Shown one piece after another: positions 26,964 to 58,595 of a DNA stretch of 64,000 bases. The notes beneath the pieces are model-generated. The model was given only the letters and a program-made list of their open reading frames with translations, did no database searches and was not told the DNA's origin. The position numbers and the translations under genes were made by a program. The stretch is taken from the sequence record MW349129.1; one strand, given 5' to 3'. Each line of letters starts with the position of its first letter. Position 1 is the stretch's first letter.

Positions 26964-26983
26964 CATTAAAATAATATATATTT
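26964..26983 (-). promoter_or_regulatory. Putative early promoter
   Basis: Minus strand AAATATATATTAT-TTTAAT-G followed by hairpin GAAGTTAGT/ATTAGCTTC. Confidence 0.7.
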
Positions 26984-26999
26984 ATATTATTAATTGAAG

Positions 27000-27180
27000 T
27001 TTATAAATTTTTATTATTAGAGTTTTTCTATGATCCAGAGTATTAATATATTTTATTAATTAAAAATATATTTATTAATAATATTTATATTAATATTAAT
27101 TATTAAATTTATAATTACTTACTAATATAAGTAATATATTAATACAAAATTTTAAAAATTTATAAATAAAAATTTTATAA
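27000..27180. other. Extreme A/T region with nested inverted repeats (candidate origin)
   Basis: 27041-27117 is A/T only; inverted repeats at 27000-27013/27153-27166 and 27040-27052/27133-27145. Confidence 0.4.
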
Positions 27181-27262
27181 AATCTGAATAACCAATTTAT
27201 ATTAATTAAAAAATCAATGACGTTTAAAAATATAATAAATTTGATTGAGGTGTATTAAGATA

Positions 27263-28471
27263 ATGGGTTTAAATAAAAAACAAGAAGAAGGATTAAGATT
27301 AGCTAAAGAATGGTATAATAATGATAGTCATAGGCCTTTTGTATTATCAGGTATTGCTGGAAGTGGGAAGTCATTTACAATGACTAAAATAATTGATTCT
27401 TTAGGCTTACATGAAGCTAATGTTTCTTTTATAGCATATACAGGAATGGCTGCAGGCGTGTTAGTCAAAAGAGGTTTGAATGCTACTACAATCCATAGAA
27501 CTATTTATAATCATTTTATGGATGAAAAAACTGGTAAAGTGAATTTTAGATTAAAAGATGAATTACCGAGAGATATTAAATTAATAATTATAGACGAAGT
27601 TTCAATGGTTCCTATGAAGATGATAGAAGAAATTCAAAGTTTTGGAATACCTATACTATGTTTAGGAGATCCAGCACAGCTTAAAAGTTTATCAGGAAGA
27701 AATGAATTATTAGATAAACCTGATATATTCTTAGATGAACCAGTAAGACAATCATTAGATAATCCTATACTTGTTGCAGCTAATTTAGTTCGTAATGGTA
27801 AAGATTTAGAATATGGTTCATATGGAGATAATGTACATGTAATTACTTCAGATGAATTGACTTTAGATATGTACCAGAATGCAGATCAAGTTCTAATGAG
27901 TTATAATAGAACGGTGGATCAATTTAATAGATTCTATAGAAGTCAAATATTAAATATTGATGTTGAAAATAATCCATTTCCTAAAGAAGATGAAAAAATT
28001 ATTTGTCTAAAAAATAATTGGTCTAAAGTAGTTAATGAAGGTAATATAACTCAATACTTAACTAATGGTTTGATTGGTAATATAACTAGATCTGGTAAAA
28101 AGAAACCTATGACTAAATCAACTCAGTTGGATTTTAAACCTAAAGGTTTTGAAATGGAAAGATTTAGTAGAATATATTACGATGATTTAATTTTTGAAGG
28201 TACTATTGGAGATCAACAAGAACTATTTGATTTAAGATTCAAAGATAATGAAATTAATAAAATATTTAAGAAACGATATGTAACCGAAATGTCTGATTTT
28301 GGTATGAAAGTAAATCCATTTAATTTTGCATACGGAATTACTATTCATAAATCTCAAGGTTCTGAATTTGATAATGTAATAGTATTTAGTGAAAATATGA
28401 GTAAAGATAGATTCAAGTCATTATATACAGCTATTACTCGTGCTAAAAAGAATTTAATTGTAGTTCAATAA
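27263..28471 (+). CDS. RecD2/Dda-like SF1B helicase
   Basis: GIAGSGKS, IIIDEVSMV, LGDPAQL, TIHKSQGSEF, LYTAITRA; GAGGTG SD favours ATG 27263. Confidence 0.9.
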   Translation: MGLNKKQEEGLRLAKEWYNNDSHRPFVLSGIAGSGKSFTMTKIIDSLGLHEANVSFIAYTGMAAGVLVKRGLNATTIHRTIYNHFMDEKTGKVNFRLKDELPRDIKLIIIDEVSMVPMKMIEEIQSFGIPILCLGDPAQLKSLSGRNELLDKPDIFLDEPVRQSLDNPILVAANLVRNGKDLEYGSYGDNVHVITSDELTLDMYQNADQVLMSYNRTVDQFNRFYRSQILNIDVENNPFPKEDEKIICLKNNWSKVVNEGNITQYLTNGLIGNITRSGKKKPMTKSTQLDFKPKGFEMERFSRIYYDDLIFEGTIGDQQELFDLRFKDNEINKIFKKRYVTEMSDFGMKVNPFNFAYGITIHKSQGSEFDNVIVFSENMSKDRFKSLYTAITRAKKNLIVVQ

Positions 28472-28491
28472 TATGTATAAGGATGATATAA

Positions 28492-28746
28492 GTGGATAAT
28501 AATAATAATGTAAGTAGTAAAATCAATAAAAATCAATTACAAACAGCAATGAATAATATGACTAAAAATATAAATGGTATAAGTAGAAAGATAACAGGAC
28601 AAGATAAAATTGATGAAATTAATAAACTTAAAAGAGAAAATGAAGAATTACATCGTTTTCTCTTTAAGATCTATCAAGATGATGATTTTGATAGAAGAGA
28701 ATTGAAGAAAATTATATTTAAAGATGTAAATAAAAAATTTAAATAA
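28492..28746 (+). CDS. Small coiled-coil protein with C-terminal tag (VNKKFK)
   Basis: SD, GTG start, operon packing. Confidence 0.75.
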   Translation: MDNNNNVSSKINKNQLQTAMNNMTKNINGISRKITGQDKIDEINKLKRENEELHRFLFKIYQDDDFDRRELKKIIFKDVNKKFK

Positions 28747-28748
28747 GG

Positions 28749-28955
28749 GTGATTAATTTGAATTCAGATATCCGAATAGATAGAAGTGGTCTTTATATAC
28801 AATCTAATGAGAAGCAGATGAAGGGGCAAATTAAAATTATAGAAGAGAACAAAAAATTAAAAGATTTTATTATTGGTATTAAAAATAATGGTGGTTATGA
28901 TGAAAAGGAATTAAATAAAATAGTAAATGAAATTGTTAAGGAGAATTTAAAATAA
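28749..28955 (+). CDS. Small protein with C-terminal tag (VKENLK)
   Basis: Tightly packed ORF. Confidence 0.7.
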   Translation: MINLNSDIRIDRSGLYIQSNEKQMKGQIKIIEENKKLKDFIIGIKNNGGYDEKELNKIVNEIVKENLK

Positions 28956-29410
28956 TGTCAAATGAAAAAGTTATTGCTAAAGAATTAACTTTAGATCAAA
29001 AAATTAAAATGTTAGAACCAAAGATAGATGAAGAGACTTATTTAAGACCATTAAGTCAAGTAGATGAATCTTTTTATAATGAGGTTATTAAAGATGAATT
29101 AATTGAGAAAATTAATAATGAAGACCATAAATTTGAAAATAATTTTGATTATCATATATTTAAAAACGGACCAATACAATTACTAGGTTTCATTTATAAA
29201 TTTGAATTTAATGAAAATGCAGTAAACGTTAAAAAAGAAAAACCTAATGAAGGTAATATCTATTTTGGAAGCTTTATATTAAATAATAAAAATAAAAAAG
29301 ATGATTCAATATATTTACTTAGAGTTGATAGCAGCTTAGTTGATTTCAGTATATTAGAAAATAAAAAATATAAAGAATTTGGTAGAAACTTATTTAAATT
29401 AATTAAATAG
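28955..29410 (+). CDS. Hypothetical protein (ends RNLFKLIK)
   Basis: TAATG coupling with the previous gene. Confidence 0.8.
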   Translation: MSNEKVIAKELTLDQKIKMLEPKIDEETYLRPLSQVDESFYNEVIKDELIEKINNEDHKFENNFDYHIFKNGPIQLLGFIYKFEFNENAVNVKKEKPNEGNIYFGSFILNNKNKKDDSIYLLRVDSSLVDFSILENKKYKEFGRNLFKLIK

Positions 29411-29421
29411 GAGTGATATAA

Positions 29422-29700
29422 ATGGATAAAGAAATCGAAGATTTAGCAGGAAAAATAAATAATCTAGAAATTGACCTTAAAGGGATGAATTACAGATTAT
29501 CTAATGATAAACAAGTTATTGATTTTGAAATAAATAAAATTAATGAATATATTAAATTTTTACATGAAGAAAATCAAAGCATCAAAAAAGAAAATATGTT
29601 GTTAAAAGAAGCAATAGTGTCTATTTCTAAACATACAGAATTTAAGAATGATTATATAAATAAATTGTCTAAAGAAATTGTTAAAGAAAATTTTAAATAA
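29422..29700 (+). CDS. Small coiled-coil protein with C-terminal tag (VKENFK)
   Basis: AGGAG SD. Confidence 0.8.
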   Translation: MDKEIEDLAGKINNLEIDLKGMNYRLSNDKQVIDFEINKINEYIKFLHEENQSIKKENMLLKEAIVSISKHTEFKNDYINKLSKEIVKENFK

Positions 29701-29720
29701 TAAAGAGATGTGATTTTATT

Positions 29721-29996
29721 TTGAATAATGAAAAAAGTTTAATTAATCGTATGGAAGAATTAGAAGAACGTACTAGAATGAATGAAATTAAATTAAATAC
29801 TATGAAAGATAATTATCATTATTTAAATGACATTATAGGTACATTAATTAATAGAATAGAAAATTCTAATCAAACTAATGAAAAGAAATTGGATGAAGTA
29901 AGATTAGAATTAGTTCGTCTTTCTAACGAATTAAATTCACATTCTGAAGTAACTAAAAAGTATCTAAAGAATTTTATCAGAGATAATCTTAAGTAA
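29721..29996 (+). CDS. Small coiled-coil protein with C-terminal tag (IRDNLK)
   Basis: ORF within the packed array. Confidence 0.7.
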   Translation: MNNEKSLINRMEELEERTRMNEIKLNTMKDNYHYLNDIIGTLINRIENSNQTNEKKLDEVRLELVRLSNELNSHSEVTKKYLKNFIRDNLK

Positions 29997-30001
29997 AGGG
30001 A

Positions 30002-30283
30002 ATGAAGTGTATGAATGCTATTAAAAGAATAATTGGTTCAGATGAATTTATTAATACTGTAAAGAAAACTATAGCTAGAACTAAGAAAGCAGAAGAGAAA
30101 TTTTATGATTTAAATAATAGAGTTGATAAAGCTTTATCTTTGGCTAATAAAGTTGTTGAAGATAATAAAGAAAAAGAAAGACAAATTAAAGAACTAAAAG
30201 AAGCTTTATCTAAAGAGAAAATTAATAACAGAAGTATAAAATCTCGATATAATAATCTACTATATAAAAATGGGGGAAAATAA
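30002..30283 (+). CDS. Small coiled-coil protein
   Basis: AAAGGG SD; heptad pattern. Confidence 0.75.
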   Translation: MKCMNAIKRIIGSDEFINTVKKTIARTKKAEEKFYDLNNRVDKALSLANKVVEDNKEKERQIKELKEALSKEKINNRSIKSRYNNLLYKNGGK

Positions 30284-30288
30284 TAATT

Positions 30289-30516
30289 ATGAATCCAGAT
30301 ATCAATTTTAATGATAATGGTAAATCTATGGATGAACTATATTCAAGGATACAACTTAGAGCAGCTAAACAAGTAGAAAAAGATATATTGAAAGATAATG
30401 AAGAATATTTTCTAGAAAAAGAAGTAAAAGAACTTAGAGAGCTTGTTTTTGAAGTAGCTAAAAAATATGACGTTAAAGAAATAAAAGATTATTTAGTTAG
30501 AAAAAATATGAAATAA
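30289..30516 (+). CDS. Small protein with C-terminal tag (IKDYLVRKNMK)
   Basis: GGGGGA SD. Confidence 0.8.
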   Translation: MNPDINFNDNGKSMDELYSRIQLRAAKQVEKDILKDNEEYFLEKEVKELRELVFEVAKKYDVKEIKDYLVRKNMK

Positions 30517-30542
30517 AGATTTAAGAAAAGAGTTGAATAAAA

Positions 30543-30734
30543 ATGGCTGAAAACGAACCTGATATTCTTAAAACAATTGAGAAAGTAACCAATGAAATTC
30601 TAGATAAAAATAAAGAATTAAAAAATGAGAATTTGGAACTTAAAGAATTGATATTGGATATTTCTAAAGATCATAATATAGTAGACAAACGTATAACTGA
30701 AATAAAAGTTGATCTAGCAAAAAATATGAGGTAA
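30543..30734 (+). CDS. Small coiled-coil protein with C-terminal tag (LAKNMR)
   Basis: ORF ends at a bidirectional terminator. Confidence 0.75.
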   Translation: MAENEPDILKTIEKVTNEILDKNKELKNENLELKELILDISKDHNIVDKRITEIKVDLAKNMR

Positions 30735-30758
30735 TGACATTAATTTGTCATTACCTCA
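30727..30758. terminator. Bidirectional terminator
   Basis: TGAGGTAATGACA-TTAATT-TGTCATTACCTCA between convergent genes. Confidence 0.8.
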
Positions 30759-30770
30759 ATTATACTGCTT

Positions 30771-32999
30771 TTAGTTATCATATTTATCTTTGTATTCATA
30801 GTAGCTATCAAATTGAACTTCTAAACCTGAGAAAGCTGAAATGAATCCCATTCTGCCTTCCATATTGATGTTTTCAATATCTTTAAAATCAACATCTGGT
30901 TTACGATAATTGAAATTCTTATTTTTGTCTATAAATATTCTAATTCTATTTTCATTTTTAATAATCTTAATATACTTGTTATTAATATCTAATGGAACAT
31001 GATTAGTTAAGAATAATTGTTTTTCTGATTCATCTTGGAATATTTCTTTAGGTTTCCCAAATACTTTATCAATTTCATAGAATCCAGTTTTCATGATACG
31101 GTCAGGATCTGTCATTACATCTTCATCATTCAAATCAAAGTAAGGAACATCCCAATTTTCTTGTTGAGAGGCTATCCAAAGCATATAACCTGAATTGAGT
31201 TGAGTGTTATAATCGAATACGATTCCCGCTCCACCAGTTTTATTTTTATTAATTACTTTAAATGTCATAATGTAATTTTTAGGGAATTTAAAGTTCTGGC
31301 TATAAACATAGTTCAATGCATCGTCATCAAATTTAGTTGTTCCTTCTATGAAGCTAATATAACCATAATTACCTAACGATTGTTTAGATAAAGTTTTATT
31401 ATAAAATCCGGTATAAGTTTGAGTTTCCACAGGAAACGTACCGTATGATCTTAATGCAACTATCATAGGATTAAAGTATATTCCTGATCTACTTTCATCA
31501 TAGAAATAATCAGAACCATCTGGATTTTTAAGTGAATAATTATACTCCAACTCAACTGTATACCAATCTTCTTTAGTTACAATAAATGTATTATCAAATT
31601 CTTCATGACTAATTCCAGCTATTTCAAATTCATCTAAACTAACTTGAATTATTTCATTTGGATCAACGTCATCAACAAAATTTGTTAATTTGACTTCTAT
31701 TTCCATTTTCTTAATATTCTTCATATTGTACATCATATGTTTAAGATATGATTTTTGACCTTGAGTATTATAATTTTTATTATTTGAAGGGAATATATTT
31801 TCTACTTTTCTGACTTTACCTGTATTTGATGTTAATGTGATATCATAAACTAATTTAGCTGTAGGATGATTATTATCTTTAAAGTTAGTTGAATATCCCA
31901 TATTAAACGCAAAGAAATCATAATTTAATAAACGTTTAATATTCATTCTAGGATTTTCATTTTCATCATCTAAAGTTATCTTAACAAATGATGCAGAATT
32001 TTCATCTTCTTTATCAGATTTACTTAAAATATCTCCTTTAACTTCATATAATCCAGTTTCTTGATTAAAGCTTACTGAAGATAATCTTGTTGATTCAAGA
32101 TTAGAATGACTTACATCTTCATCATTAGCTTTTCTTAAGTCAAATATAGCTGTAGGTGCTTTAAATTGATAGTTCTCTGTAGCATTGATTATATTAAAAC
32201 CTTTTCTGTCTGTTATTTTTAATTTAGATGTACCATTTTGTAAAGGTGCAAATAAATATTTCTCTCCTGGTTTAAAGTACATTTTACCCTGAAATTTACG
32301 TGAAAAACCTTTTTTGTAAAATAAGTGTGGTAGAGTTTTCAAGCCATCATTATTAAGTGTAAATGGTTCTACTAAATCTTTATTATCTGTATCAGGTCTA
32401 TAGAATTTATGCTCATGAACTTCATGTCTTTCTCTTAGATATCTATCAGAAGTGATATTCTCTAATTTATCTTCAAAATCTGTTTCAGGTACAAATGGTA
32501 TAATTCTAGGATCGTTATATCCCGGAGTAACTCTACCTGATTTTTCTTCAGTACTTTTCATCATGTGTTTAAAAATAGGTTTAGGATTATTTTCAGTACC
32601 TAATATTTCATTTTCTTCATTAATAATCTTATTTAAATTATTAATGACAGTCTCTGGAAAAATTTTTACAGTATCTGTATTAAATTGATCTACTGTTTGC
32701 ATATCATTAACGAAAAGTAAAAGATACCAAAGATCAGTAGTACCATATAATTCATTAGATAAATATTCAGGTCTATAGTGATATGATTTTGATAAATCAT
32801 AATCTATTAAATCTCGTTTAAGTACATTTTCATATTTTTTTAGTAATGGTAAACTAAAGACAGCTTGTTTTTCAAATAAATACCATTCTGATATATTATT
32901 AAGTAATATTTTATTCGTCTTGGAGTATCCTATTTCATCAGACATTTCAGGTACATCATTTCTACCCATATTGTTATTTCCTACGTCACGAATAAGCAA
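30771..32999 (-). CDS. Baseplate wedge (T4 gp53/LysM-like) protein with a C-terminal lectin-like beta-sandwich
   Basis: YRPEYLSNELYGTTDLWYLLLFVN; C-terminal GAGIVF..RIRIFID..GRMGF..VQFDS. Confidence 0.65.
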   Translation of the reverse strand: MLIRDVGNNNMGRNDVPEMSDEIGYSKTNKILLNNISEWYLFEKQAVFSLPLLKKYENVLKRDLIDYDLSKSYHYRPEYLSNELYGTTDLWYLLLFVNDMQTVDQFNTDTVKIFPETVINNLNKIINEENEILGTENNPKPIFKHMMKSTEEKSGRVTPGYNDPRIIPFVPETDFEDKLENITSDRYLRERHEVHEHKFYRPDTDNKDLVEPFTLNNDGLKTLPHLFYKKGFSRKFQGKMYFKPGEKYLFAPLQNGTSKLKITDRKGFNIINATENYQFKAPTAIFDLRKANDEDVSHSNLESTRLSSVSFNQETGLYEVKGDILSKSDKEDENSASFVKITLDDENENPRMNIKRLLNYDFFAFNMGYSTNFKDNNHPTAKLVYDITLTSNTGKVRKVENIFPSNNKNYNTQGQKSYLKHMMYNMKNIKKMEIEVKLTNFVDDVDPNEIIQVSLDEFEIAGISHEEFDNTFIVTKEDWYTVELEYNYSLKNPDGSDYFYDESRSGIYFNPMIVALRSYGTFPVETQTYTGFYNKTLSKQSLGNYGYISFIEGTTKFDDDALNYVYSQNFKFPKNYIMTFKVINKNKTGGAGIVFDYNTQLNSGYMLWIASQQENWDVPYFDLNDEDVMTDPDRIMKTGFYEIDKVFGKPKEIFQDESEKQLFLTNHVPLDINNKYIKIIKNENRIRIFIDKNKNFNYRKPDVDFKDIENINMEGRMGFISAFSGLEVQFDSYYEYKDKYDN

Positions 33000-33032
33000 G
33001 ATTATTTCACTTCCATTCTTATTTTGTTATAA

Positions 33033-33096: not shown

Positions 33097-33116
33097 AAAT
33101 ATATATTATTTTAATG
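33097..33116 (+). promoter_or_regulatory. Putative early promoter
   Basis: AAATATATATTAT-TTTAAT-G plus hairpin. Confidence 0.7.
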
Positions 33117-33182
33117 AGATTGAGATAAATTAATCTTAATACTCAAAAATAAAAATTGTTAATTATAAGGAGAGATTTGGAT

Positions 33183-34727
33183 ATGGCAAAAGTAAAATAC
33201 TCACAAACAAAATTATTGGTAAGAGCAGCATTTAGATCAGATGAAATTATCAACGTAGTTGGTGATGGAGGAATTGGTAAAACACAAATGATGAGAGATA
33301 TTGCTGAAGAAGATAATATGAACTTCATTACAATTGCTGCAAATAACTTAAAAGAAGGGGAATTATCTTTACCAATGTTATCACAAAAAGATAATGAAGT
33401 TATCTATGCTCCAATGGATAAAATTAAGTTAGCTAATAGTCTTTTTGATAGATATAAAGAATATCAAAGAGAAGGTGGAAAACAATATTCACGTAAAGAC
33501 CTTTCTTTAAAATCTGTTGATGAATTAAAAGAAATTTATGTGAAATTGACTGGTAAAGATATTGTTGATTATTATGAGGATACTCATGAAAACTATGTTA
33601 ATAAAGTATTTAACAAAGCTAGAGTTAAAAATGTTAAATATAGTAAAAATGATTTAATGAAAAAATCATTTGACGAGTTAGATGAAATTTATACAGAATT
33701 AACAGGTAAAGAATTAAGAGATAAAATTGGTAAAGGTTTCTATATCAAAGAAATTTTAGAAGCAGTTCCAAGACCTTATACTCTATTATTCATTGATGAG
33801 ATTGGTCGTACAGACCAACAAGTACAATCAGAGTTAATGAACTTCTTATTAGAACGTCAAGTAAACGGTTATCATTTACCACCTAATGTTAAAATCGCAC
33901 TAGCACAAAACCCATCTTCAGATATGCCGGGATTTGAAGATTCAGAATATGCAGCAACTTCTATGGATAACGCTGTAAGTTCACGTATCACATTTGTGCA
34001 CATGATTCCAGATATTGAAAGTTGGGTAGACTTTGCTACTAAATATAAAGATGGTTCAGAAAAGCAAAATATTCATCCATCTATTGTTGAGTTTGTAACT
34101 GAAAAAGAGAGTACTGAATACTTATTCAGACCTCAAAAAGAAGCTGGTAAAGATTTCAATGATACGAATCCACGTTCTTGGGAAATGATCTCTAACATGC
34201 TATATGTATTAGAAGAAGATGACATGTTTAAATTCTCTAATAGAGAAGAAGAGAAACGTAAGAAGAAAGATACTTTACAATTCTTCACTGAAGGTAAAAT
34301 TAATAGTGATTTAGCAAACTTATTTGTTAAATTCTATATTGAGAAACAAGCTAAATTACCTCGTCCAAGTGATATTCTATTTGAATATGATAAAGGTAAA
34401 ATGGTTCCTCGTAAAGAATTAGCTAAACAGCATATTGAAGTTATTGAAAGTCAATCAACTATTAGACAGTTAACATTGAAAACTTCAATGATTAACTACT
34501 TAAAAAATAATCCTGATTTAGCTGAAGAGCAAGTTATTCAAATTGCTGTAGAAGCTTTATTATTAGGTAAAGTTGAAACTAATGCTACACCAATTAGATT
34601 AATTTCTAGACTTTCAGAATCTACTGAAGAGTCAGACCAAGAATTATATGAGAAATTCACTGATAACGAACTATACAGTGACAAAGCATTTGCACTATAC
34701 GAACAAATGGTAGGAAGTTTAGGATAA
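33183..34727 (+). CDS. MoxR-like AAA+ ATPase
   Basis: GDGGIGKT, LLFIDE, SSRITF, NPRSWE; AAGGAG SD favours ATG 33183. Confidence 0.85.
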   Translation: MAKVKYSQTKLLVRAAFRSDEIINVVGDGGIGKTQMMRDIAEEDNMNFITIAANNLKEGELSLPMLSQKDNEVIYAPMDKIKLANSLFDRYKEYQREGGKQYSRKDLSLKSVDELKEIYVKLTGKDIVDYYEDTHENYVNKVFNKARVKNVKYSKNDLMKKSFDELDEIYTELTGKELRDKIGKGFYIKEILEAVPRPYTLLFIDEIGRTDQQVQSELMNFLLERQVNGYHLPPNVKIALAQNPSSDMPGFEDSEYAATSMDNAVSSRITFVHMIPDIESWVDFATKYKDGSEKQNIHPSIVEFVTEKESTEYLFRPQKEAGKDFNDTNPRSWEMISNMLYVLEEDDMFKFSNREEEKRKKKDTLQFFTEGKINSDLANLFVKFYIEKQAKLPRPSDILFEYDKGKMVPRKELAKQHIEVIESQSTIRQLTLKTSMINYLKNNPDLAEEQVIQIAVEALLLGKVETNATPIRLISRLSESTEESDQELYEKFTDNELYSDKAFALYEQMVGSLG

Positions 34728-36806: not shown

Positions 36807-38876
36807 ATGTTAAAAAAGACTACAGAAAATGAATTAGAAAAGTTATTTAATGTCACTATTTATAATAAAGAATTTTCTAATTTGAAACCTATGTATAATA
36901 GAAAAGATACAGAAACTAGAACTAAATTAAATGATAATCAAAACTCTAGAGTGTATGAGAATTTAATAAATTTCATTAATTATTCTAAAGCAGGAATGAC
37001 TCATATGTTTTTAACTCGTTCTAATAAATATAAAGGTAAATATATTGATTTCCTAAAAAATAGACTTGGTAAAGAAGATTTATTATATAAGAATGAATAT
37101 GACTATACAGATAGATTTTTCAGATCTTTTATATACAATATAGATATAATTAGTAGAAGTGAATATCAAACACATCAATCTATAGAAAATGACTCTAAAT
37201 TAGAAGATTCTTTCTTATTAAGAAATGGAAATTCAAGTATTGACAGTTTTAAAACAGATAATGGATTATCTATAGAATTTTTAGATAAAGATGTAAAGAA
37301 AGATTTCTTAGACAAAAACAAGCAAATTAGTTTAGAATCTTTACTAGCTATTGATACAATGGTATCTAATTCATTAAGAAAGAAATGGATAAAATCAATT
37401 GAACGTGAAGAATTACCTGATATGAATATTATATTTAAAGAAGTTCCAGAAGTTGTAATTATATTAGCTAATAGTATATATGATGGATCAGGCTTCAGAT
37501 TATCACACATAGATAGAAGTGTTATTAATATAAATGAAGATGTTTCAGATGTTTTAAAACCAATATTAACTTTAACATCTAATATCAATTATAAATTAAT
37601 ATTGGATTTAATGAATAAAGATCATTTAGACGAAAAATCAAAACATTTAAAAAATAATGAATTTTGTTTATTTGACGATGATGATATTGATGCCGCATTT
37701 ACTATAATCGGAAATATTAAAAGACAAACAGATCACATTAATAATTTTATAGAAGAAGGTAAATCAGATAATCTAGAAGATAATATTAATTTAATAATTA
37801 AAGAAAATGAAAATGAAGTAGATGATAATTTTGGAGAAATAATAAAAGTTTATATTGATAGAGTATTATCTAAATTTAGAGAATATGTTAAAGATGATAC
37901 CGATATATTAAAAAATTCATCTAAGATTTTAATAGGTGAAGATTTATTTGATTTCCTTATGAAATTAGATGACCTCGAAATTTTGATGGTTAGAAATATA
38001 TACAGAGTTTTAGATAATAATTTATATAATCCTGTAATCAGAGATGTTAGAGAATCAAAAGAAGAAGTTATGAATGAAATAACAGATTATTTTAAAAATA
38101 ACACTAAGAAATTATATTTAGATTTATCTAATATCGATATAAGTAAATTGAAAGATAGTTCTTTTGCATTATTAAATGATTTCATAACAAATGGAGAAGT
38201 AAATAACCTTCGTATGAAGCCTAATGAATTTAATATGGAGTATTTCTATCAATTAAGTATGGGTAAAGAATTAAACCGTGACATATTAAATAGTAATATA
38301 CAATATATGAAGCAAGAATTATTAGAAAATTTTAATGTTGAATCTAAAACAACTTCCAATGCTATTATTGAATTTGATAGCTTTAATATTAATTTTGCTG
38401 TAATAGAAAATAATTCATATAATAATGAAGTAGAAATAATGATGCAAGGAGTTACTTTTAAGAAAAAATTAACTGATGAAGATATTGCTACTATCTTTTT
38501 ATATTCACATAAAGAAGTTAGTATATACCACGACAAAAAATTGGTTATCATGGATAGAAATTATTACTCTAGAAGAGGTATAAATAAATTTATAAATAAT
38601 ATGAATAATATCTTTACTGATTTAGATGGGGAAAGTTTATCTAAATATATGTCTTTAATTTATGATTTGTTATCTTTATCAGATAATTCTCTTGAAGAAA
38701 ATAAAGAAATTTATAATACTTTATATTATAATAAATTTGAATATATTAATGAAGAAAATGAATTAAAAATCGATAGTTATATTAATATAATTAATAATAA
38801 AGATATAACATCTGATTTTAAAAAGAAATTTAAAAAGGTAAGATCTAAGTATTTAGTTTCTAGAATATTTATTTAA
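36807..38876 (+). CDS. Hypothetical protein (689 aa), tag-like end VSRIFI
   Basis: AAAGGAG SD, long ORF. Confidence 0.85.
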   Translation: MLKKTTENELEKLFNVTIYNKEFSNLKPMYNRKDTETRTKLNDNQNSRVYENLINFINYSKAGMTHMFLTRSNKYKGKYIDFLKNRLGKEDLLYKNEYDYTDRFFRSFIYNIDIISRSEYQTHQSIENDSKLEDSFLLRNGNSSIDSFKTDNGLSIEFLDKDVKKDFLDKNKQISLESLLAIDTMVSNSLRKKWIKSIEREELPDMNIIFKEVPEVVIILANSIYDGSGFRLSHIDRSVININEDVSDVLKPILTLTSNINYKLILDLMNKDHLDEKSKHLKNNEFCLFDDDDIDAAFTIIGNIKRQTDHINNFIEEGKSDNLEDNINLIIKENENEVDDNFGEIIKVYIDRVLSKFREYVKDDTDILKNSSKILIGEDLFDFLMKLDDLEILMVRNIYRVLDNNLYNPVIRDVRESKEEVMNEITDYFKNNTKKLYLDLSNIDISKLKDSSFALLNDFITNGEVNNLRMKPNEFNMEYFYQLSMGKELNRDILNSNIQYMKQELLENFNVESKTTSNAIIEFDSFNINFAVIENNSYNNEVEIMMQGVTFKKKLTDEDIATIFLYSHKEVSIYHDKKLVIMDRNYYSRRGINKFINNMNNIFTDLDGESLSKYMSLIYDLLSLSDNSLEENKEIYNTLYYNKFEYINEENELKIDSYINIINNKDITSDFKKKFKKVRSKYLVSRIFI

Positions 38877-38894
38877 ATATATATTATATAATTG
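38875..38894 (+). promoter_or_regulatory. Putative early promoter
   Basis: AAATATATATTAT-ATAATT-G plus hairpin GAGTTGAT/ATCAACTC. Confidence 0.7.
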
Positions 38895-38951
38895 AGTTGA
38901 TGATTAGATTTATCAACTCAATTTAATTTTAATTAATATGAGGAGAGTGAA

Positions 38952-40133
38952 ATGGATATGAGTAAAGCAATGAAAGATTTCTTTATCAATTATGATATTT
39001 CTTATATTGATATTAATGAGAATCATGAACTTAATGAAATTGAAAAAGAAGAATTATTAAAATTAATGGATATCAATATTACATCTGAAGGGGTTGATAT
39101 TTTAATAAGTGATAATGTTAAATTAATTAATTTTAATGGTAATTATTTAAAAAATTTCGTATTTAATTATTACTATACAAATAATGAATCACTAAAAGTA
39201 TTTTTAAAAGATGTTATCAAAGATATTATTATGTATGGATATAAAGAAGATAGAAAAATAAGTCTAAATATAAATCAATTACCTTTAATATTCTATATAA
39301 ATAAATTTTGTAAAGATAATGGTATTAAAAATATTAAATTCTTTTATACTTTTAAAAATTCATATGGAAATTTTTCATTTGGTTTATTAAAAGAAGAACA
39401 TCTAGATGAATTTATCAATGATATGGATGAAATAAGTAATAATAAATTTTTCAATTTAAATAGAGAATTTTTAGATACTAAATTATTGATTAATGGAAAT
39501 AAAAAGAAATTTATGAAACTAATGTCTAGTTTAATAGATTTGGATATGTCACATAAGAGTAATATATTTAAATTAACAATGATAAATTATTTTTATAAAT
39601 TATTCAATAGACATATTGATAGTAAAGAAGATTTGGAATATGCAGATGAATTAATGAAGTCTAAAATAGATAGCGTTAAATATGATGAATTTAATAAATA
39701 CTATCTATTTGAAAGATCCATAATTGGTATAGATACATTATATGAACTCCTAGGATACAATAAGATAACAAATTATAATTATTTTACTGAAAAAATACAA
39801 AGAGTTGAAGATGAAGATAAAGTTAAACACCTTTCAAAAATCAATTTCTTTAAATCAATAGATGATATTTATAAGGAAGCATCATTCTTGTTATCCTTTG
39901 AAACAGCCAATGAATATACAGACATTGCAGTTAAAGAAATATTAAGATTAATTGAAAATAATTTTACAGAAAATCAGAAAAAACAATTTGTTAAAGCATA
40001 TATGAGTATCAAAGATAGTTCATTTAACATTTCAAATGATAAATATAATCAAACATCTACACTTGTTAAAATGTCTAAAGGAAAATTAAAGAAATTAATT
40101 ATGAATGAAACAGTTAAAAAGACATTTATTTAA
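38952..40133 (+). CDS. Hypothetical protein, tag end VKKTFI
   Basis: GAGGAG SD. Confidence 0.85.
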   Translation: MDMSKAMKDFFINYDISYIDINENHELNEIEKEELLKLMDINITSEGVDILISDNVKLINFNGNYLKNFVFNYYYTNNESLKVFLKDVIKDIIMYGYKEDRKISLNINQLPLIFYINKFCKDNGIKNIKFFYTFKNSYGNFSFGLLKEEHLDEFINDMDEISNNKFFNLNREFLDTKLLINGNKKKFMKLMSSLIDLDMSHKSNIFKLTMINYFYKLFNRHIDSKEDLEYADELMKSKIDSVKYDEFNKYYLFERSIIGIDTLYELLGYNKITNYNYFTEKIQRVEDEDKVKHLSKINFFKSIDDIYKEASFLLSFETANEYTDIAVKEILRLIENNFTENQKKQFVKAYMSIKDSSFNISNDKYNQTSTLVKMSKGKLKKLIMNETVKKTFI

Positions 40134-45513: not shown

Positions 45514-45533
45514 AAATATATATTATAGAATTG
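45514..45533 (+). promoter_or_regulatory. Putative early promoter
   Basis: AAATATATATTAT-AGAATT-G plus hairpin TGTATCTT/AAGATACA. Confidence 0.7.
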
Positions 45534-45578
45534 TGATAGAAGTGTATCTTTTTTAAGATACATTTTTAAATAAATGAA

Positions 45579-50719: not shown

Positions 50720-50750
50720 GAGGTAACGGACAATTATAGTTCGTTACCTC
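50720..50750 (+). terminator. Terminator after the RNAP gene
   Basis: GAGGTAACG / CGTTACCTC. Confidence 0.7.
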
Positions 50751-50784: not shown

Positions 50785-50804
50785 AAATATATATTATAAT
50801 TATG
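50785..50804 (+). promoter_or_regulatory. Putative early promoter
   Basis: AAATATATATTAT-AATTAT-G plus hairpin AGTTGAT/ATCAACT. Confidence 0.7.
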
Positions 50805-50854
50805 AAGTTGATAATTATTAATCAACTAATTTAAATAAAAAAGGATGATAAATT

Positions 50855-51151
50855 ATGACAATCAAAATTATTAAAAATGAAATGCTACAGGAAGCTGTAG
50901 AAGGAAAAGAGAATAACGGTGGAGGTTACGAACATACTCGTACTGTTTTCGAATTCCAAGGAAAACAAGGAGTTTTCGAAGACACTTCTTGTGGTGATTT
51001 CGGTAGCAGATTCTTCATGGAATGGGATGGAAAAATGGCTATGTGGGGAAGTATGATTGATGAAGAATTCGAATACAGTGAATTCGATGAACAAGAACAA
51101 TCAGAACTTCTAAAGCATTTTAGTGTTCCTGTTTTTGAAGAAACAATCTAG
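50855..51151 (+). CDS. Small acidic early protein (monocistronic)
   Basis: About 22 D/E versus 8 K/R in 98 aa; own promoter and terminator. Confidence 0.85.
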   Translation: MTIKIIKNEMLQEAVEGKENNGGGYEHTRTVFEFQGKQGVFEDTSCGDFGSRFFMEWDGKMAMWGSMIDEEFEYSEFDEQEQSELLKHFSVPVFEETI

Positions 51152-51176
51152 GACATTAATGTCCTAGATTTCTTTT
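51145..51176 (+). terminator. Intrinsic terminator
   Basis: AATCTAGGACA-TTAA-TGTCCTAGATT then T-run. Confidence 0.8.
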
Positions 51177-51209
51177 ATTTTTTTTCTAAAAATATTCTAT
51201 TTTATGATT

Positions 51210-51229
51210 AAATATATATTATAAAAATA
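51210..51229 (+). promoter_or_regulatory. Putative early promoter
   Basis: AAATATATATTAT-AAAAAT-A. Confidence 0.65.
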
Positions 51230-51308
51230 GATGCAATTAAATATATTGAAAGATGTTGTTTTATATGTAAAGTTTTAGAAGAATTTAATAAGGGAGCTGA
51301 AATAGATA

Positions 51309-51791
51309 ATGATATATTACAAAAATAAAGTAAATAATGAAATATATGAAGTTAATAATATTCATAGAAAGGATGATGCTTTTTATTATGTGTTTGGTAA
51401 TGAATTTAAAAAAGAAAGAATGGAATTATATGAATCAGTGGGTAAAAAAATTGATTTATTTGATAAAGATAAAGGACATAAAGAATTAAACTTCCAATTA
51501 AATTATGACTCATCTAGATTATTTTTAGTTACACATATGAAATATGATAATAATAATCCTTTTGCACCTAAAGTAGTAGATTTAAAGAATCAAAATCTTG
51601 TCTCATCTGATTCTTCAGAAGATCTTTACTATATATTATATAAAAGAATGTGTAATGCAATAGATATACCTTTATTAAATTATAATATATTATTAAAAGA
51701 ATTTAATTTTGATAATGAAGACATATTTAAAATAATACCAGAAGATTGTAAAGAAGTAAAAGATTTTAAAATTAGAAATCTTTTTAAATAA
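51309..51791 (+). CDS. Tag-family protein (paralog of 52519-53010)
   Basis: MIYYKNKVNNEIYEV...IRNLFK. Confidence 0.85.
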   Translation: MIYYKNKVNNEIYEVNNIHRKDDAFYYVFGNEFKKERMELYESVGKKIDLFDKDKGHKELNFQLNYDSSRLFLVTHMKYDNNNPFAPKVVDLKNQNLVSSDSSEDLYYILYKRMCNAIDIPLLNYNILLKEFNFDNEDIFKIIPEDCKEVKDFKIRNLFK

Positions 51792-52508: not shown

Positions 52509-52518
52509 GGAAGTGTAA

Positions 52519-53010: not shown

Positions 53011-53015
53011 GGAGA

Positions 53016-53201: not shown

Positions 53202-53202
53202 A

Positions 53203-53856: not shown

Positions 53857-53867
53857 AAATATGTATT

Positions 53868-53887
53868 AAATATATATTATAAAAATG
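53868..53887 (+). promoter_or_regulatory. Putative early promoter
   Basis: AAATATATATTAT-AAAAAT-G; perfect 14-bp hairpin at 53887-53917. Confidence 0.75.
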
Positions 53888-53949
53888 AGATAATGAATTA
53901 ATATAATTCATTATCTCTATATTAATTTAATTAGGAGAGTGAAAAAGAT

Positions 53950-54558
53950 ATGGATTTAAAAGAGAATAAATTTTATTATAATAAAGATATTAATGAGCTT
54001 TTTATAATTGGTAAGGATGAAAGTGATATTAACGATAAGATAAATAAATTCTATTATAAAAAATTATTAGAAAAAAATTTAGATTATCATGGTTTAATTA
54101 ATAATCTTTATTATAATAGAAATATAAATTTTGATTTAATGGATGATGACGATATATATTTTAGTAATATGTATAATGGAATTAGAGAATATATTAAGGT
54201 GAGTTATGTAGAATTTTCATGTACAAATTTTGAAGATAATGAAGTAATATTACAGTTAGATACTTTTATTGATAAAAGCAATGATAAAAATCTTTTAGAA
54301 GTTCATAAAAATTCGCATGGTGTTACCATAACAATGGTAAAAGGTTTTTATGAAAAAGATCTTATAAATTATAATGAATACAAAAATATTTTAGACAAAT
54401 TATCTGGTCTGTTTGACACAATGCTTAAAGAAGAAAATGATGGAAATATTAAAATCTTTATAAATGATATTGATATATTTGAACCTTATGCATATTTTAG
54501 AGAGTTAGAAGACGAAAGAGGAATTAAAAATATTTTGGTTAAGAAAAATTTTATATAA
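53950..54558 (+). CDS. Tag-family protein
   Basis: Ends ELEDERGIKNILVKKNFI. Confidence 0.85.
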   Translation: MDLKENKFYYNKDINELFIIGKDESDINDKINKFYYKKLLEKNLDYHGLINNLYYNRNINFDLMDDDDIYFSNMYNGIREYIKVSYVEFSCTNFEDNEVILQLDTFIDKSNDKNLLEVHKNSHGVTITMVKGFYEKDLINYNEYKNILDKLSGLFDTMLKEENDGNIKIFINDIDIFEPYAYFRELEDERGIKNILVKKNFI

Positions 54559-54572
54559 AGGAGATAGATATA

Positions 54573-55193
54573 ATGGATGTAAATGAATATATAAATAATC
54601 ATGATTTTTATAGAGTTGGGAATGACGGTCAAGTATTTGTATTTAATAAAGATATATCAAAAGATGAATTAAATTCTAAAATATTTTCTAAATTATTTGC
54701 ATGCGAAAATATAGGAATTTTATTGTCTGAATATGGTTATTATGTAATAGATGAATATAATGTATTCTTAAGAAATAATGATAAAATATTATTAGTTGAA
54801 AATATGACTATTGATCTAAGTTTAATTAAAGATGATCTAATTGAATTAAATTTTACATTAATTATTAAATCTAGTCTTCCTTCAAAAATTGGCCCTTTTG
54901 AAAAAGATAATCATGATCCTTTTTATTATTATAATACTATTATTCAAATAGAAAATAAAGATAACTTTCAACATGAATTAATTTCTCATATAACAAATCA
55001 TTTTAATAAAATGAGCGATGTTGATTTAATGCTTTTAACTACTAAAAATGAAATTAAATTTAATAAAGATTATAGCGTTAATAAAAAATGTATTGATTTT
55101 AAATGTAATTTTAATGAAATTTATAAAATACTTAATAAATTAGAAGATGAAAAAGAAATTAAAAAATATCTAACTAAAGAAAATTTTAAATAA
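54573..55193 (+). CDS. Tag-family protein
   Basis: Ends LEDEKEIKKYLTKENFK. Confidence 0.85.
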   Translation: MDVNEYINNHDFYRVGNDGQVFVFNKDISKDELNSKIFSKLFACENIGILLSEYGYYVIDEYNVFLRNNDKILLVENMTIDLSLIKDDLIELNFTLIIKSSLPSKIGPFEKDNHDPFYYYNTIIQIENKDNFQHELISHITNHFNKMSDVDLMLLTTKNEIKFNKDYSVNKKCIDFKCNFNEIYKILNKLEDEKEIKKYLTKENFK

Positions 55194-55206
55194 GGATGAA
55201 ATAAAT

Positions 55207-55770
55207 ATGAATTTAGATAATATTGTAATATTAAAAAAGAAAAATGATGGTGAATTTGACAATAACAAATTTATAGAATTTAATCATAATAATATTAATA
55301 ATGATGAAATATTAAGTCTTTCTTTAATTACTCTATATACAAGCGTGTATGCATTTTATATAAAAAGTGATATGAAATATGACAATTTTGTTAGTTATTT
55401 AGCTAATTTTTATTTAGAAATAGATGGGTATTTAAAAGGACCTTTAAATATAACACATGATGAAAATAATAGAATGCTTATAATTTATAAAGGAAGACTA
55501 CCACAAGATATTTTCAAAGTTAGAGAATTTAACGTAAATACTAAATTATATGCGTATTTAATTAAAGGTGATAATTACGATACGGTAGAAGATGATCTAA
55601 TCAAATCAGTAATCAATGGATCAGAATATATAATAAACAGTGAAAGAATTAAACCAAAAATTATTATCAATGGATTATATAAGGATATTACAAATGTATT
55701 AAATTATTTTGAAAAACTTACCGATGAAAGAGAAATTAAAAATTACTTAGTTCAGAAAGGATTTATATAA
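55207..55770 (+). CDS. Tag-family protein
   Basis: Ends LTDEREIKNYLVQKGFI. Confidence 0.85.
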   Translation: MNLDNIVILKKKNDGEFDNNKFIEFNHNNINNDEILSLSLITLYTSVYAFYIKSDMKYDNFVSYLANFYLEIDGYLKGPLNITHDENNRMLIIYKGRLPQDIFKVREFNVNTKLYAYLIKGDNYDTVEDDLIKSVINGSEYIINSERIKPKIIINGLYKDITNVLNYFEKLTDEREIKNYLVQKGFI

Positions 55771-55787
55771 AATAAGGAGGATTAAAA

Positions 55788-56411
55788 TTGGATAAGACAT
55801 TATATGTATCAGATATATTAGATGAAAAAATTATAGGAAGAAAGGATCTTAATAAAGATGAACTTTTTGATTTGTCATTTAATACAATTTTAAATAATTC
55901 TGATGACAATAGATTTAATAAAGAAGGATTTAGTTTAATGTTAACGTTTTCAAAAGGATTAATTTTAAAATTTGATTATACAGACAAATATTTTTATGTG
56001 AAAGATTTTATATTTTTAATAGAAAAAGTTGATGGCAACTATGAATTTAATTTTACATTAAGTATTCCAGAATTTACAGACAGTAAAATTGAAATTGGAT
56101 TAGGAATTTTTGAATCTGAAAAAGGTCATAGAGAATTTTATTTTAATGATTTTTCTTGTTATAAAGAAGGAAAAACTTTATTAGAAAGAGCTAAAGAATA
56201 TTTAACGGATGATATTTTTAATAATTATGGATTAAGTATCAATATTTTTACATTGAAAAATAAAAATAGAATTTTGTCAGATTATGATTTTGTCATAAAT
56301 AATAATGATATAGATGAGATTTACAGTTTAAAAAATATAGACAAATTATTTAAAGAAGTAACAAATGAGAAAGAAATTAAAAACTATTTAACTAAAGAAA
56401 ATTTTAAGTAG
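55788..56411 (+). CDS. Tag-family protein
   Basis: Ends EVTNEKEIKNYLTKENFK; TTG start behind AAGGAGG. Confidence 0.85.
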   Translation: MDKTLYVSDILDEKIIGRKDLNKDELFDLSFNTILNNSDDNRFNKEGFSLMLTFSKGLILKFDYTDKYFYVKDFIFLIEKVDGNYEFNFTLSIPEFTDSKIEIGLGIFESEKGHREFYFNDFSCYKEGKTLLERAKEYLTDDIFNNYGLSINIFTLKNKNRILSDYDFVINNNDIDEIYSLKNIDKLFKEVTNEKEIKNYLTKENFK

Positions 56412-56456
56412 AGTGAAGTAAAAATAATTATTTAATTCAGAAAGGGTTTAGTTAAT

Positions 56457-57059
56457 ATGGAAATGAATTTAGATTCTTATGAATATTATTATAATGATGA
56501 TGAAAAAGTTTTAGCTAAAACACCAGTTGATATATCAAAAGAAACTACTAATAAAAAGATTTCAATTGAATACTATAAAAATATATTTAAAAAAGATTTT
56601 TATCTGTTTCGTAAACAAATTATTGGAACTCATGTAATATTCGACAGTGATTCTTTGCATAAAATAATTAATAAGAGTGATGGAACATCTGTACCAGGAT
56701 TTAATTTATTATTAGATTTTGAAGTTCTTAGTGTTTCAAGAGAAATTATCTTGAAACTAAGTTTTTCAATTAATGATTCTAAATTCTTTAAAACATTTGA
56801 TAAAAGTAAAGATATTTTAGAATTTTCAAAAATGAGTTCTATATATTACGATCATGTAGAGGATAACCTTGAAGATAAAATGGCATATTTATTAGCTAAA
56901 CTATTCTTTGATATGCATGTGAATGAGAATGAAGATATCGAAATTTATTTAGAGGATAAATTTAATGAAATGTTAGATATATCTAAACCGTATAAATACT
57001 TTAGATTGTTAAATGAAAAAGAAGTTAAAAAACACTTAACAAGAGAAGGATTTAAATAA
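56457..57059 (+). CDS. Tag-family protein
   Basis: Ends LNEKEVKKHLTREGFK. Confidence 0.85.
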   Translation: MEMNLDSYEYYYNDDEKVLAKTPVDISKETTNKKISIEYYKNIFKKDFYLFRKQIIGTHVIFDSDSLHKIINKSDGTSVPGFNLLLDFEVLSVSREIILKLSFSINDSKFFKTFDKSKDILEFSKMSSIYYDHVEDNLEDKMAYLLAKLFFDMHVNENEDIEIYLEDKFNEMLDISKPYKYFRLLNEKEVKKHLTREGFK

Positions 57060-57130
57060 ACATTTTTAATGAATTTAATTAACTTTCTTTTATATTAATA
57101 AATATAATGAAAGAGAGTTGAATAAGATAA

Positions 57131-57910
57131 ATGTCTGAAACTAATGAAATTGATTTAATATCACAAATCAATGATATGATGGATGAGTATAAAATGTTAG
57201 TTAAATTTAAAGATAAAATGGAAAATAAAGAAATTCAATTAGAAAATCGTATACAGGATTTAACTAAGAATCTGAAATATCCTAAACATACATTCGTATC
57301 TAATATGGAAGCTAATATTATCAGTGTAGAAAAAGAAATTAAAGATACTATTATGCAAATGAAAAATGTTAAAAAAGATATTATTGACTTAACTATGAAA
57401 GCTCAGAAAATGGCTGAAGATGATGAATCTGAAGATAATTACAAAACTCTTGCTAAAAATGTACTTAATGAGCTTAATAATATGTCTAATAAAGATATTC
57501 TAAACAGTATGATGGAACCTGAAGAAGTAAATGATGAAGATACTGATTTTAGTGAAGAATTGGATGCGAAATTATCACAATTAGATGAAGAAGAGAAATC
57601 TATTAATAAAGAAGTAGATCAAAAAGAAGAATTAAGCGAAGAAATTAATGAACTAGACCAACAAGATTTATCTTCTATATTAAAAGTCTATAAAGGCACA
57701 TTACAATTCTTTGTTATAGGAGATTCTCCTGAAGAATATGAATTAGTAGTTGCTGATATGGATATGAATATTATTGAAGAAGATGAAATGAAAGATGAAT
57801 ACCCAGAGTTATTTACTATGACTAGAGATCTATTATTTGAAGATGTTGAAGGTAATGATGAAATAGTTACAGATGATTTTGGAAATATTTATCAAAAAGC
57901 AGAATTTTAA
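57131..57910 (+). CDS. Acidic coiled-coil protein
   Basis: 259 aa, heptad N-terminal half, D/E-rich C-terminal half. Confidence 0.85.
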   Translation: MSETNEIDLISQINDMMDEYKMLVKFKDKMENKEIQLENRIQDLTKNLKYPKHTFVSNMEANIISVEKEIKDTIMQMKNVKKDIIDLTMKAQKMAEDDESEDNYKTLAKNVLNELNNMSNKDILNSMMEPEEVNDEDTDFSEELDAKLSQLDEEEKSINKEVDQKEELSEEINELDQQDLSSILKVYKGTLQFFVIGDSPEEYELVVADMDMNIIEEDEMKDEYPELFTMTRDLLFEDVEGNDEIVTDDFGNIYQKAEF

Positions 57911-57920
57911 ATTATTTTAC

Positions 57921-57951
57921 CCCATAATATATTAATACAATATATTATGGG
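57921..57951 (+). terminator. Stem-loop/terminator
   Basis: CCCATAATATATT / AATATATTATGGG. Confidence 0.7.
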
Positions 57952-57980
57952 TATTTATTATATAGGAGAGTGAAATAGAT

Positions 57981-58106
57981 ATGTTAAAAAGATTATACAA
58001 TTTATTAACTAAGAAAAAATTTGAAAAGAGATTATACGACTTTAGATTTAATTATCAAGATCATGAACATCTAAATCAAGTTCATAGAGATTCAAATAAT
58101 ATATAA
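57981..58106 (+). CDS. 41-aa microprotein missing from the ORF track
   Basis: AGGAG SD; MLKRLYNLLTKKKFEKRLYDFRFNYQDHEHLNQVHRDSNNI*. Confidence 0.6.
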   Translation: MLKRLYNLLTKKKFEKRLYDFRFNYQDHEHLNQVHRDSNNI

Positions 58107-58125
58107 TATGAAAGGATGATTATTA

Positions 58126-58527
58126 ATGTTATCAGAATATAGATTAAATTCAAGTAAAGAAAATATTAAACAGCTATTAAGAGATTATGGTTTTAAAAAG
58201 GACTCTTATACTAAAGCTTTATTATATAGAAAACGTGTAACTGATCCAAATGATATTTTATTCATAGTAGCTGAAGTAGTTATTGAAACTAATTCAGATC
58301 TAGTTAAATTAAATTACTATGATAGTAAACATAATAGATTTAATCCTTCTAATGAATCACCAGAAGTTCAAAAGGGATTAAGTATATTAGAAGATATGAA
58401 AGAAAAAGAATTATTAATTGAACCAGAATTAACTCGAAATGAAGAAGAAAAAGAAGTTCTTGATAAACTTAAAAAACAACGTGAAGAAATGGAAAATGGT
58501 CAAGTATCACCCAATTCTGAAAATTAG
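58126..58527 (+). CDS. Hypothetical protein
   Basis: GAAAGGA SD. Confidence 0.8.
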   Translation: MLSEYRLNSSKENIKQLLRDYGFKKDSYTKALLYRKRVTDPNDILFIVAEVVIETNSDLVKLNYYDSKHNRFNPSNESPEVQKGLSILEDMKEKELLIEPELTRNEEEKEVLDKLKKQREEMENGQVSPNSEN

Positions 58528-58530
58528 AAT

Positions 58531-58550
58531 AAATATATATTATAAAAATG
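58531..58550 (+). promoter_or_regulatory. Putative early promoter
   Basis: AAATATATATTAT-AAAAAT-G plus hairpin ATCCCAATACTA/TAGTATTGGGAT. Confidence 0.75.
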
Positions 58551-58595
58551 TTATCCCAATACTATTAAATTAGTATTGGGATTATTATACTAAAA

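Follow-up and report, generated by a model that had tools for sequence, protein, structure and literature searches.

Predicted 5'-terminal hairpins coupled to AR9-type early promoters in Staphylococcus jumbo phage Madawaska

Predicted early promoters and leader hairpins in the window

Madawaska is a Staphylococcus jumbo phage of the AR9/PBS1 kind (record MW349129.1), and its 265-kb genome encodes two split multisubunit RNA polymerases, one of the virion and one of the non-virion type. Bases 62001-126000 of the record (64,000 nt; hereafter called the window, in whose numbering positions are given unless the record is named) contain eight exact copies of the 13-mer AAATATATATTAT, and we describe here these copies, which are most probably early promoters, together with an RNA hairpin predicted at or close to the transcript start in seven of the eight cases. 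The record is identical to the window over these bases, and a 12-kb piece of the window taken by itself gave a 100% match at 95000-107000. All copies are co-oriented with an annotated gene, the start of which lies 51-80 nt downstream (gp089, gp100, gp103, gp111, gp116, gp117, gp122, and gp130). These gene starts have been taken from the annotation of the record, and our own start-codon finder gave leader lengths up to about 6 nt too short where TTG or ATG precedes the annotated ATG. The virion RNA polymerase (vRNAP) beta' gene is annotated inside the window, and thus the phage-encoded split virion polymerase required by a promoter of the AR9 type is available. Coordinates of the features are listed in Table 1.

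Table 1. Promoters, hairpins and terminators in the window, with predicted start sites (+1), minimum free energies and z-scores.
Feature	Position	Strand	Remarks
Predicted early promoter 1	26964-26983	-	13-mer at 26971-26983, spacer, predicted +1 G at 26964; genes driven: gp089-gp088
5'-terminal hairpin, promoter 1	26941-26964	-	+1 to +24; -9.5 kcal/mol; z -3.9
Predicted early promoter 2	33097-33116	+	13-mer, spacer, predicted +1 G at 33116; gene driven: gp100 (ATP-binding protein)
5'-terminal hairpin, promoter 2	33116-33144	+	+1 to +29; -9.8 kcal/mol; z -5.0
Predicted early promoter 3	38875-38894	+	Overlaps gp102 stop; predicted +1 G at 38894; genes driven: gp103 and those after it
5'-terminal hairpin, promoter 3	38894-38919	+	+1 to +26; -13.0 kcal/mol; z -5.2
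Predicted early promoter 4	45514-45533	+	Predicted +1 G at 45533; gene driven: gp111
Hairpin, promoter 4	45537-45568	+	+5 to +36; -13.8 kcal/mol; z -4.7; sole case in the window with a U-run
Terminator-like hairpin (canonical)	50720-50750	+	After vRNAP beta' gene, upstream of promoter 5
Predicted early promoter 5	50785-50804	+	Predicted +1 G at 50804; gene driven: gp116
Hairpin, promoter 5	50806-50827	+	+3 to +24; -6.3 kcal/mol; z -3.3
Annotated terminator	51145-51170	+	After gp116, upstream of promoter 6; annotated span 51143-51185
Predicted early promoter 6	51210-51229	+	Predicted +1 A at 51229; leader of 80 nt; hairpin absent; genes driven: gp117-121
Predicted early promoter 7	53868-53887	+	Predicted +1 G at 53887; genes driven: gp122 and those after it
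5'-terminal hairpin, promoter 7	53887-53917	+	+1 to +31; -15.3 kcal/mol; z -5.3
Predicted early promoter 8	58531-58550	+	Predicted +1 G at 58550; genes driven: gp130-133
Hairpin, promoter 8	58553-58582	+	+4 to +33; -16.9 kcal/mol; z -5.7

The number of exact copies in the window is far above the 0.23 expected by shuffling, and none of 100 shuffled sequences reached eight. In the full genome, the 13-mer occurs 22 times (18 on the plus and 4 on the minus strand), while the reversed pattern used as a control does not occur. After all eight copies in the window there is a six-nucleotide spacer ending in T, which is followed by G in seven cases and by A in one (51229); genome-wide, G occupies this +1 position in 21 of the 22 exact copies. 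A preliminary description of this DNA had reported the eight copies with their positions and strands, each upstream of a gene and in its sense, as well as the spacer and the purine after it, and we recovered all of these at all sites. It had also pointed to an AR9-like core, and here the match goes further than was claimed, because the entire published string AAATATATATTAT-(6N)-G(+1) is found.

This consensus was obtained from 41 early start sites of phage AR9 mapped by differential RNA sequencing and primer extension (Lavysh et al., 2017; PMC5312081). The early transcripts of AR9 are present by 5 min and accumulate despite chloramphenicol (PMC5312081), and are therefore made by the injected virion polymerase. 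By the use of MEME, the same motif was found upstream of 29 genes of MarsHill, a phage of the same clade as Madawaska, in the paper describing MarsHill, Madawaska, and Machias (bioRxiv 10.1101/2020.12.14.422802). Since the AR9 consensus has been published and the MarsHill motif predicted, the promoter part is already known for this phage group. Madawaska and AR9 share the 13-mer, the six-nucleotide spacer and the G start, have similar numbers of exact genome copies (22 and 24, respectively) with co-oriented genes downstream, and encode homologous virion polymerases. Information profiles of the early promoters of Madawaska, Machias, and AR9 are conserved over the same extent, i.e., the 13-mer, T at -1 and G at +1, and no conserved -35 hexamer was found upstream of the 13-mer in these profiles. 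Host sigma-70-type promoters were not enriched (136 found vs. 144 expected). We thus regard it as highly probable, on the basis of the sequence likeness, that the vRNAP reads the Madawaska motif as an AR9-type early promoter. The start sites have been mapped in AR9 and are predicted in Madawaska; a start at the predicted purine is what the comparison would imply, and both the mapped start and the independence of protein synthesis have been shown for AR9 only. As a separate observation, an A at -30, 11 nt upstream of the 13-mer, is at least 80% conserved in the early promoters predicted for Madawaska, Machias, and AR9, and may be an extra upstream contact for the virion polymerase.

For the eight sites in the window, the segment from +1 to +45 was folded, and z-scores were calculated against dinucleotide shuffles. 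Seven of the eight segments fold with free energies of -6.3 to -16.9 kcal/mol and z-scores of -3.3 to -5.7, and the first paired base is +1 in four of them and +3, +4, and +5 in the other three. This agrees with the preliminary description, in which a stem-loop had been noticed near the predicted starting purine at seven of the sites. At 51210, where the predicted start is an A, there is no hairpin (z +0.25). This sole predicted A-start promoter (51210-51309) has an 80-nt unstructured leader and lies directly behind an annotated terminator, and the layout is identical in phage S6. No additional degenerate promoter-plus-hairpin sites were found within the window, and a search of the window with Rfam 15 gave no matches at the gathering score.

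Hairpins are not mentioned in the MarsHill paper, which describes the AT-rich motif alone and does not contain the words hairpin, stem-loop, or terminator. Neither hairpin nor stem-loop is mentioned in the AR9 transcriptome, MarsHill/Madawaska, and DC4 papers or in two reviews on jumbo-phage polymerases and biology, and a further full-text literature search, of limited coverage, yielded nothing relevant on a hairpin behind early promoters. The coupling of a hairpin to the early promoter in Staphylococcus jumbo phages therefore appears to be undescribed.

Distribution and conservation of the hairpin

On the basis of vRNAP beta' comparison, nine further Staphylococcus jumbo phages are the close relatives of Madawaska. 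The next relatives are Bacillus phages BpSp, Goe21, AR9, and PBS1 and Listeria phage LPJP1, with vRNAP beta' identities of about 43-44% (43% for the N-terminal part between Madawaska and AR9). Yersinia phage phiR1-37 is more distant (32% identity) and has only four copies of the 10-mer core. For counting across genomes, a predicted early promoter was defined by at most one mismatch to the 13-mer, a purine at +1, and a Shine-Dalgarno-supported open reading frame within 150 nt, and a hairpin by a minimum free energy (MFE) of -5 kcal/mol or lower with its first pair at +5 or earlier.

With these definitions, a hairpin is found behind 27 of the 35 predicted early promoters of Madawaska (77%; median z -3.5), and the proportions are similar in S6 (24/32, 75%), LY01 (21/31, 68%), SA1 (19/32, 59%), and Machias (20/31, 65%). 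Outside the Staphylococcus phages, the counts are 0/29 in AR9, 1/33 in BpSp, and 1/17 in LPJP1, with z-scores centered on zero. The pooled difference between the Staphylococcus phages and the others corresponds to a Fisher p of about 1e-25, in which the genomes are not independent. The hairpin also follows the promoter class: near-matches to the 13-mer located within genes or having T or C at +1 do not have such a pattern, and candidate late promoters (AACA-N6-T[AG]), whose distances from start codons peak at 30-39 nt as in AR9, are followed by a +1-type hairpin in 6% of cases (n = 33). Among generic leader windows, 12% reach an MFE of -5 kcal/mol or lower.

Positions and dimensions of the hairpins are fairly uniform. 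In the five Staphylococcus phages, the first paired base of hairpins with an MFE of -5 kcal/mol or lower is +1 in 87 of 114 cases and between +1 and +4 in 109 of 114. The stems have a median length of 11 bp (range 6-15 bp) and close with AT-rich loops of 3-9 nt, the whole structure ending near +29. When whole leaders were folded, the median unpaired probability was 0.04 for +1 to +4 and 0.75 for the Shine-Dalgarno sequence. The distance from the 3' end of the hairpin to the start codon has a median of 31 nt (interquartile range 27-33), which is close to the median of the entire leader in the Bacillus and Listeria phages (35 nt), and the leader of the Staphylococcus phages therefore has the appearance of an AR9 leader to the front of which a hairpin has been joined. 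In contrast to the leaders of Madawaska, those of AR9 itself measure only about 27-41 nt and lack structure (median z of about 0).

A pattern scan of IMG/VR for the promoter gave chiefly single chance matches. One complete uncultivated, AR9-like jumbo phage, IMGVR_UViG_3300046542_000248 (246,901 bp, 35% GC), carries the 13-mer unchanged at 36 predicted promoters, and a T follows in every case; its leaders are short and AR9-like, and its vRNAP beta' is 34% identical. The identity of the 13-mer means that the promoter is widely conserved despite strong divergence of the polymerase. Since 6 of these 36 promoters have a +1 hairpin, the hairpin is not strictly exclusive to the Staphylococcus phages; it is the norm in their branch and is used now and then outside it.

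Several comparisons point to selection on the pairing of the sense RNA. Of 94 unique hairpins, 69 fold more stably as sense RNA than as the reverse complement and 13 less stably (p of about 1e-10), and internal helix positions contain 37 G·U pairs vs. one A·C mismatch. Because transitions yield G·U and A·C equally, this asymmetry indicates that pairing has been maintained on the sense strand only. Orthologous hairpins with at least three differences have a mean MFE of -8.4 kcal/mol, compared with -3.7 kcal/mol under an equal number of random substitutions (p = 5e-11), and the +1 hairpin has been retained in 30 of 42 orthologs differing at three or more positions. When base pairs were projected between orthologs, 17 double compensatory changes were counted vs. 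6 double breaks. At some orthologous sites, e.g., record positions 14421, 43017, and 262473, an unrelated stem has been substituted, and no loop motif is common among the hairpins compared. From these substitution patterns, the 5' RNA hairpin is very probably real and under selection.

Possible functions of the hairpin

The explanation as a whole toward which we lean, by a little over an even chance, is an AR9-type promoter combined with a 5'-terminal stem-loop that blocks decay. In this explanation, the multisubunit RNA polymerase that is carried inside the virion and is injected together with the DNA would recognize the 13-mer at -19 to -7 and would start at the purine past the six-base spacer, with T at -1 and G at +1. 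Phages of the Staphylococcus branch would have gained a hairpin of about 29 nt ahead of the AR9-like leader of about 31 nt, so that the first bases of the early mRNA would be paired. The stem-loop would then withhold a single-stranded end from the host RppH-type pyrophosphohydrolase and from the 5'-exonuclease RNase J1/J2, and the first phage messages would live longer through blocking of 5'-end-dependent decay. For the shielding function taken by itself, which combines a predicted start site with a presumed effect on half-life, we consider the chances to be evenly balanced.

A 5'-terminal stem-loop with 0-3 unpaired nucleotides is the classical block to 5'-end-dependent decay. RppH of B. subtilis requires at least 2-3 unpaired 5' nucleotides; the ompA and papA mRNAs of E. 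coli and the aprE mRNA of B. subtilis are stabilized by 5' stem-loops; and in S. aureus a stem-loop at the new 5' end of the processed cspA mRNA guards against RNase J. The phage hairpins have the geometry of such stabilizers, with the stem beginning within about 0-3 unpaired nucleotides of the predicted 5' end (109/114), and they also have the property that structure and not sequence is kept, as judged from the ortholog folds, the compensatory changes and the lack of a loop motif. In the known cases, likewise, the stem-loop is at or a few nucleotides from the 5' end, has no sequence requirement and leaves the ribosome site free, and its mechanism in those systems is the lack of a single-stranded 5' end for RppH and RNase E or J. 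A difference is that the known stabilizers belong to single genes, whereas the Staphylococcus phages have fitted the element, with a stabilizing effect that is predicted, to an entire promoter class. We favor the decay shield, which agrees with each sequence test made here: the geometry, the freedom of sequence, the selection on the sense RNA, and the free ribosome site all fit.

Several facts weigh against this explanation. RNase J1 and RppH likewise operate in B. subtilis, and yet AR9 and BpSp are without hairpins; a shield is therefore no general need of this type of phage. A ribosome close to the 5' end is also known to stabilize mRNA, and the short leaders of the Bacillus phages may bring one there. 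However, a leader of 40 nt or less, on which a ribosome could sit near the 5' end, is found in only about half of the hairpin-less promoters of the Staphylococcus phages, and these hairpin-less promoters, including 51210, amount to 23-41% of the predicted early promoters in that group. The counts of the five Staphylococcus phages are not independent of one another, and a G excess on the coding strand somewhat favors G·U pairs by chance. In addition, the hairpin at 45537-45568 could, from its sequence, be an intrinsic terminator or attenuator.

Another explanation, which is improbable but the strongest of the alternatives, is that the nascent hairpin acts in transcription by the vRNAP of the Staphylococcus clade, where it might keep the polymerase from backtracking, or the RNA 5' end from pairing again with the uracil-containing template, during early elongation; RNA decay would then be of little relevance. 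The tie of the hairpin to the early vRNAP promoter class, its rarity behind late-type promoters, and its anchoring at +1 would be natural in this case; selection on the sense RNA fits equally well, and the polymerases may differ, since the vRNAP beta' of the Staphylococcus clade and that of the Bacillus clade share just 43% identity. Against this, the same promoter works without a hairpin in AR9, the fraction of predicted promoters mentioned above has none in the Staphylococcus phages, and the stems and loops have no conserved sequence for polymerase contact. Furthermore, the 3' arm ends near +29, and because of the lengths of the hybrid and the exit channel the hairpin should form only after the polymerase has passed about +40, long after promoter escape, to which it would thus give no help. 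A role in promoter escape, which had been offered in the preliminary description as an option beside protection from decay, is consequently implausible, also because AR9, BpSp, and LPJP1 use the promoter without a hairpin. Two other parts of that interpretation have held up: the promoter reading through the identity with the AR9 consensus, and the statement that the hairpins are not terminators through the U-tract counts given below.

Two further explanations are both unlikely, to about the same degree. According to the first, the +1 hairpin is a mark of self: when infection begins, the Staphylococcus jumbo phages would set off, or themselves supply, a 5'-end-dependent attack on host mRNA, from which the hairpin would exempt their own first messages. 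This would explain the confinement of the hairpin to the early class and mainly to one clade, and, if true, the hairpin would be a required partner of host shut-off rather than a simple booster of half-life. According to the second, the hairpin is a handle for an RNA-binding protein or a nuclease, of the phage or the host, through which early messages might be translated selectively, be spared while host mRNA is shut off, or be destroyed on schedule once late expression begins. Specificity for the early class, enrichment in one clade, the fixed place at the RNA end, and the fairly constant distance to the start codon would suit a handle, but the small AT-rich loops share no motif and the stems vary freely between sites and orthologs. 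A canonical RNase III site needs roughly 20 bp, and the stems of 6-15 bp are too short for it; no stem reaches 18 bp, and an RNase III site is accordingly unlikely.

It is less likely still that the hairpin tunes translation of the first gene, e.g., as a spacer or standby platform before the A-rich linker and the strong Shine-Dalgarno sequence. The constrained distance between hairpin and start codon and an extended initiation motif shared behind many early leaders are in line with such tuning. However, the hairpin never pairs with the Shine-Dalgarno sequence, and AR9-type leaders of the same length function without a hairpin. Sequestration of the Shine-Dalgarno sequence, and with it a translational repressor, can be rejected, because this sequence is predicted to be free. 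The extended initiation motif is an observation in its own right: it consists of GGAGA, an optional G, TGAA, and about 8 nt ending in GATATG or GATAATG, and it occurs 22 times in Madawaska, 20 times in Machias, and twice in AR9. Half of its copies lie directly behind early promoters, examples in the window being 33168-33185, 38934-38954, 53934-53952, and 58598-58616.

We give little credence to the idea that the hairpins are terminators or insulators against read-through from upstream or antisense transcription. The promoters often lie directly behind a co-directional gene, a terminator scan flags 53887-53917 on the plus strand and two hairpins on the minus strand, and a U-run is present at the 45537-45568 hairpin; the minus-strand calls are due to the A-rich spacer, which reads as a T-rich tail on that strand. 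Nevertheless, 0 of 27 Madawaska hairpins have five or more T among the 8 nt that follow the stem (mean 2.9 T and 4.9 A), the flanks being A-rich, and intrinsic terminators are thereby rejected, with 45537-45568 as an ambiguous case. Hairpins are also present at the divergent promoters at 26971 and 33097, which have no upstream co-directional gene, whereas distinct terminators are already located upstream of promoters 5 and 6 (Table 1); the terminator-like hairpin in front of promoter 5 means that insulation there is done by a separate element. G·U pairs on the sense strand only oppose an antisense role, and anchoring at +1 would be meaningless for a terminator. At 45537-45568, in the gp111 leader, the run of U lies within and behind the 3' arm; this hairpin is conserved in LY01, while Machias has a weak +1 hairpin instead.

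Finally, it is very improbable that the inverted repeats act as DNA, i.e., as a cruciform or single-strand hairpin in replication or packaging or in the manner of phage N4, the virion RNA polymerase of which recognizes a DNA hairpin, because the repeat lies at +1 to about +29, downstream of the start and outside the recognition region, because AR9 has no repeats, and because the 37 internal G·T wobbles vs. one A·C show that the pairing of one strand has been maintained, an asymmetry on which both a DNA cruciform and an antisense function are rejected.

Early operons and significance for the phage group

An AR9 homolog was detectable for just one of the eight first genes behind the promoters of the window. 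The early operons of promoters 7 and 8 (53950-57059 and 58614-61784, respectively) contain runs of hypothetical proteins of similar size, about 187-207 and 246-272 amino acids, and these runs resemble arrays of paralogs.

The promoter adds nothing new by itself, and the hairpin is the new part. One virion-polymerase promoter is combined with unstructured leaders in the Bacillus and Listeria phages and with structure-capped leaders in the Staphylococcus phages, and this natural contrast makes it testable what limits the survival of the earliest phage transcripts in S. aureus. Annotators should avoid labeling +1 hairpins as terminators. The promoter and its leader provide a compact, sequence-flexible design rule for annotation of early operons in a therapeutically relevant group of phages.

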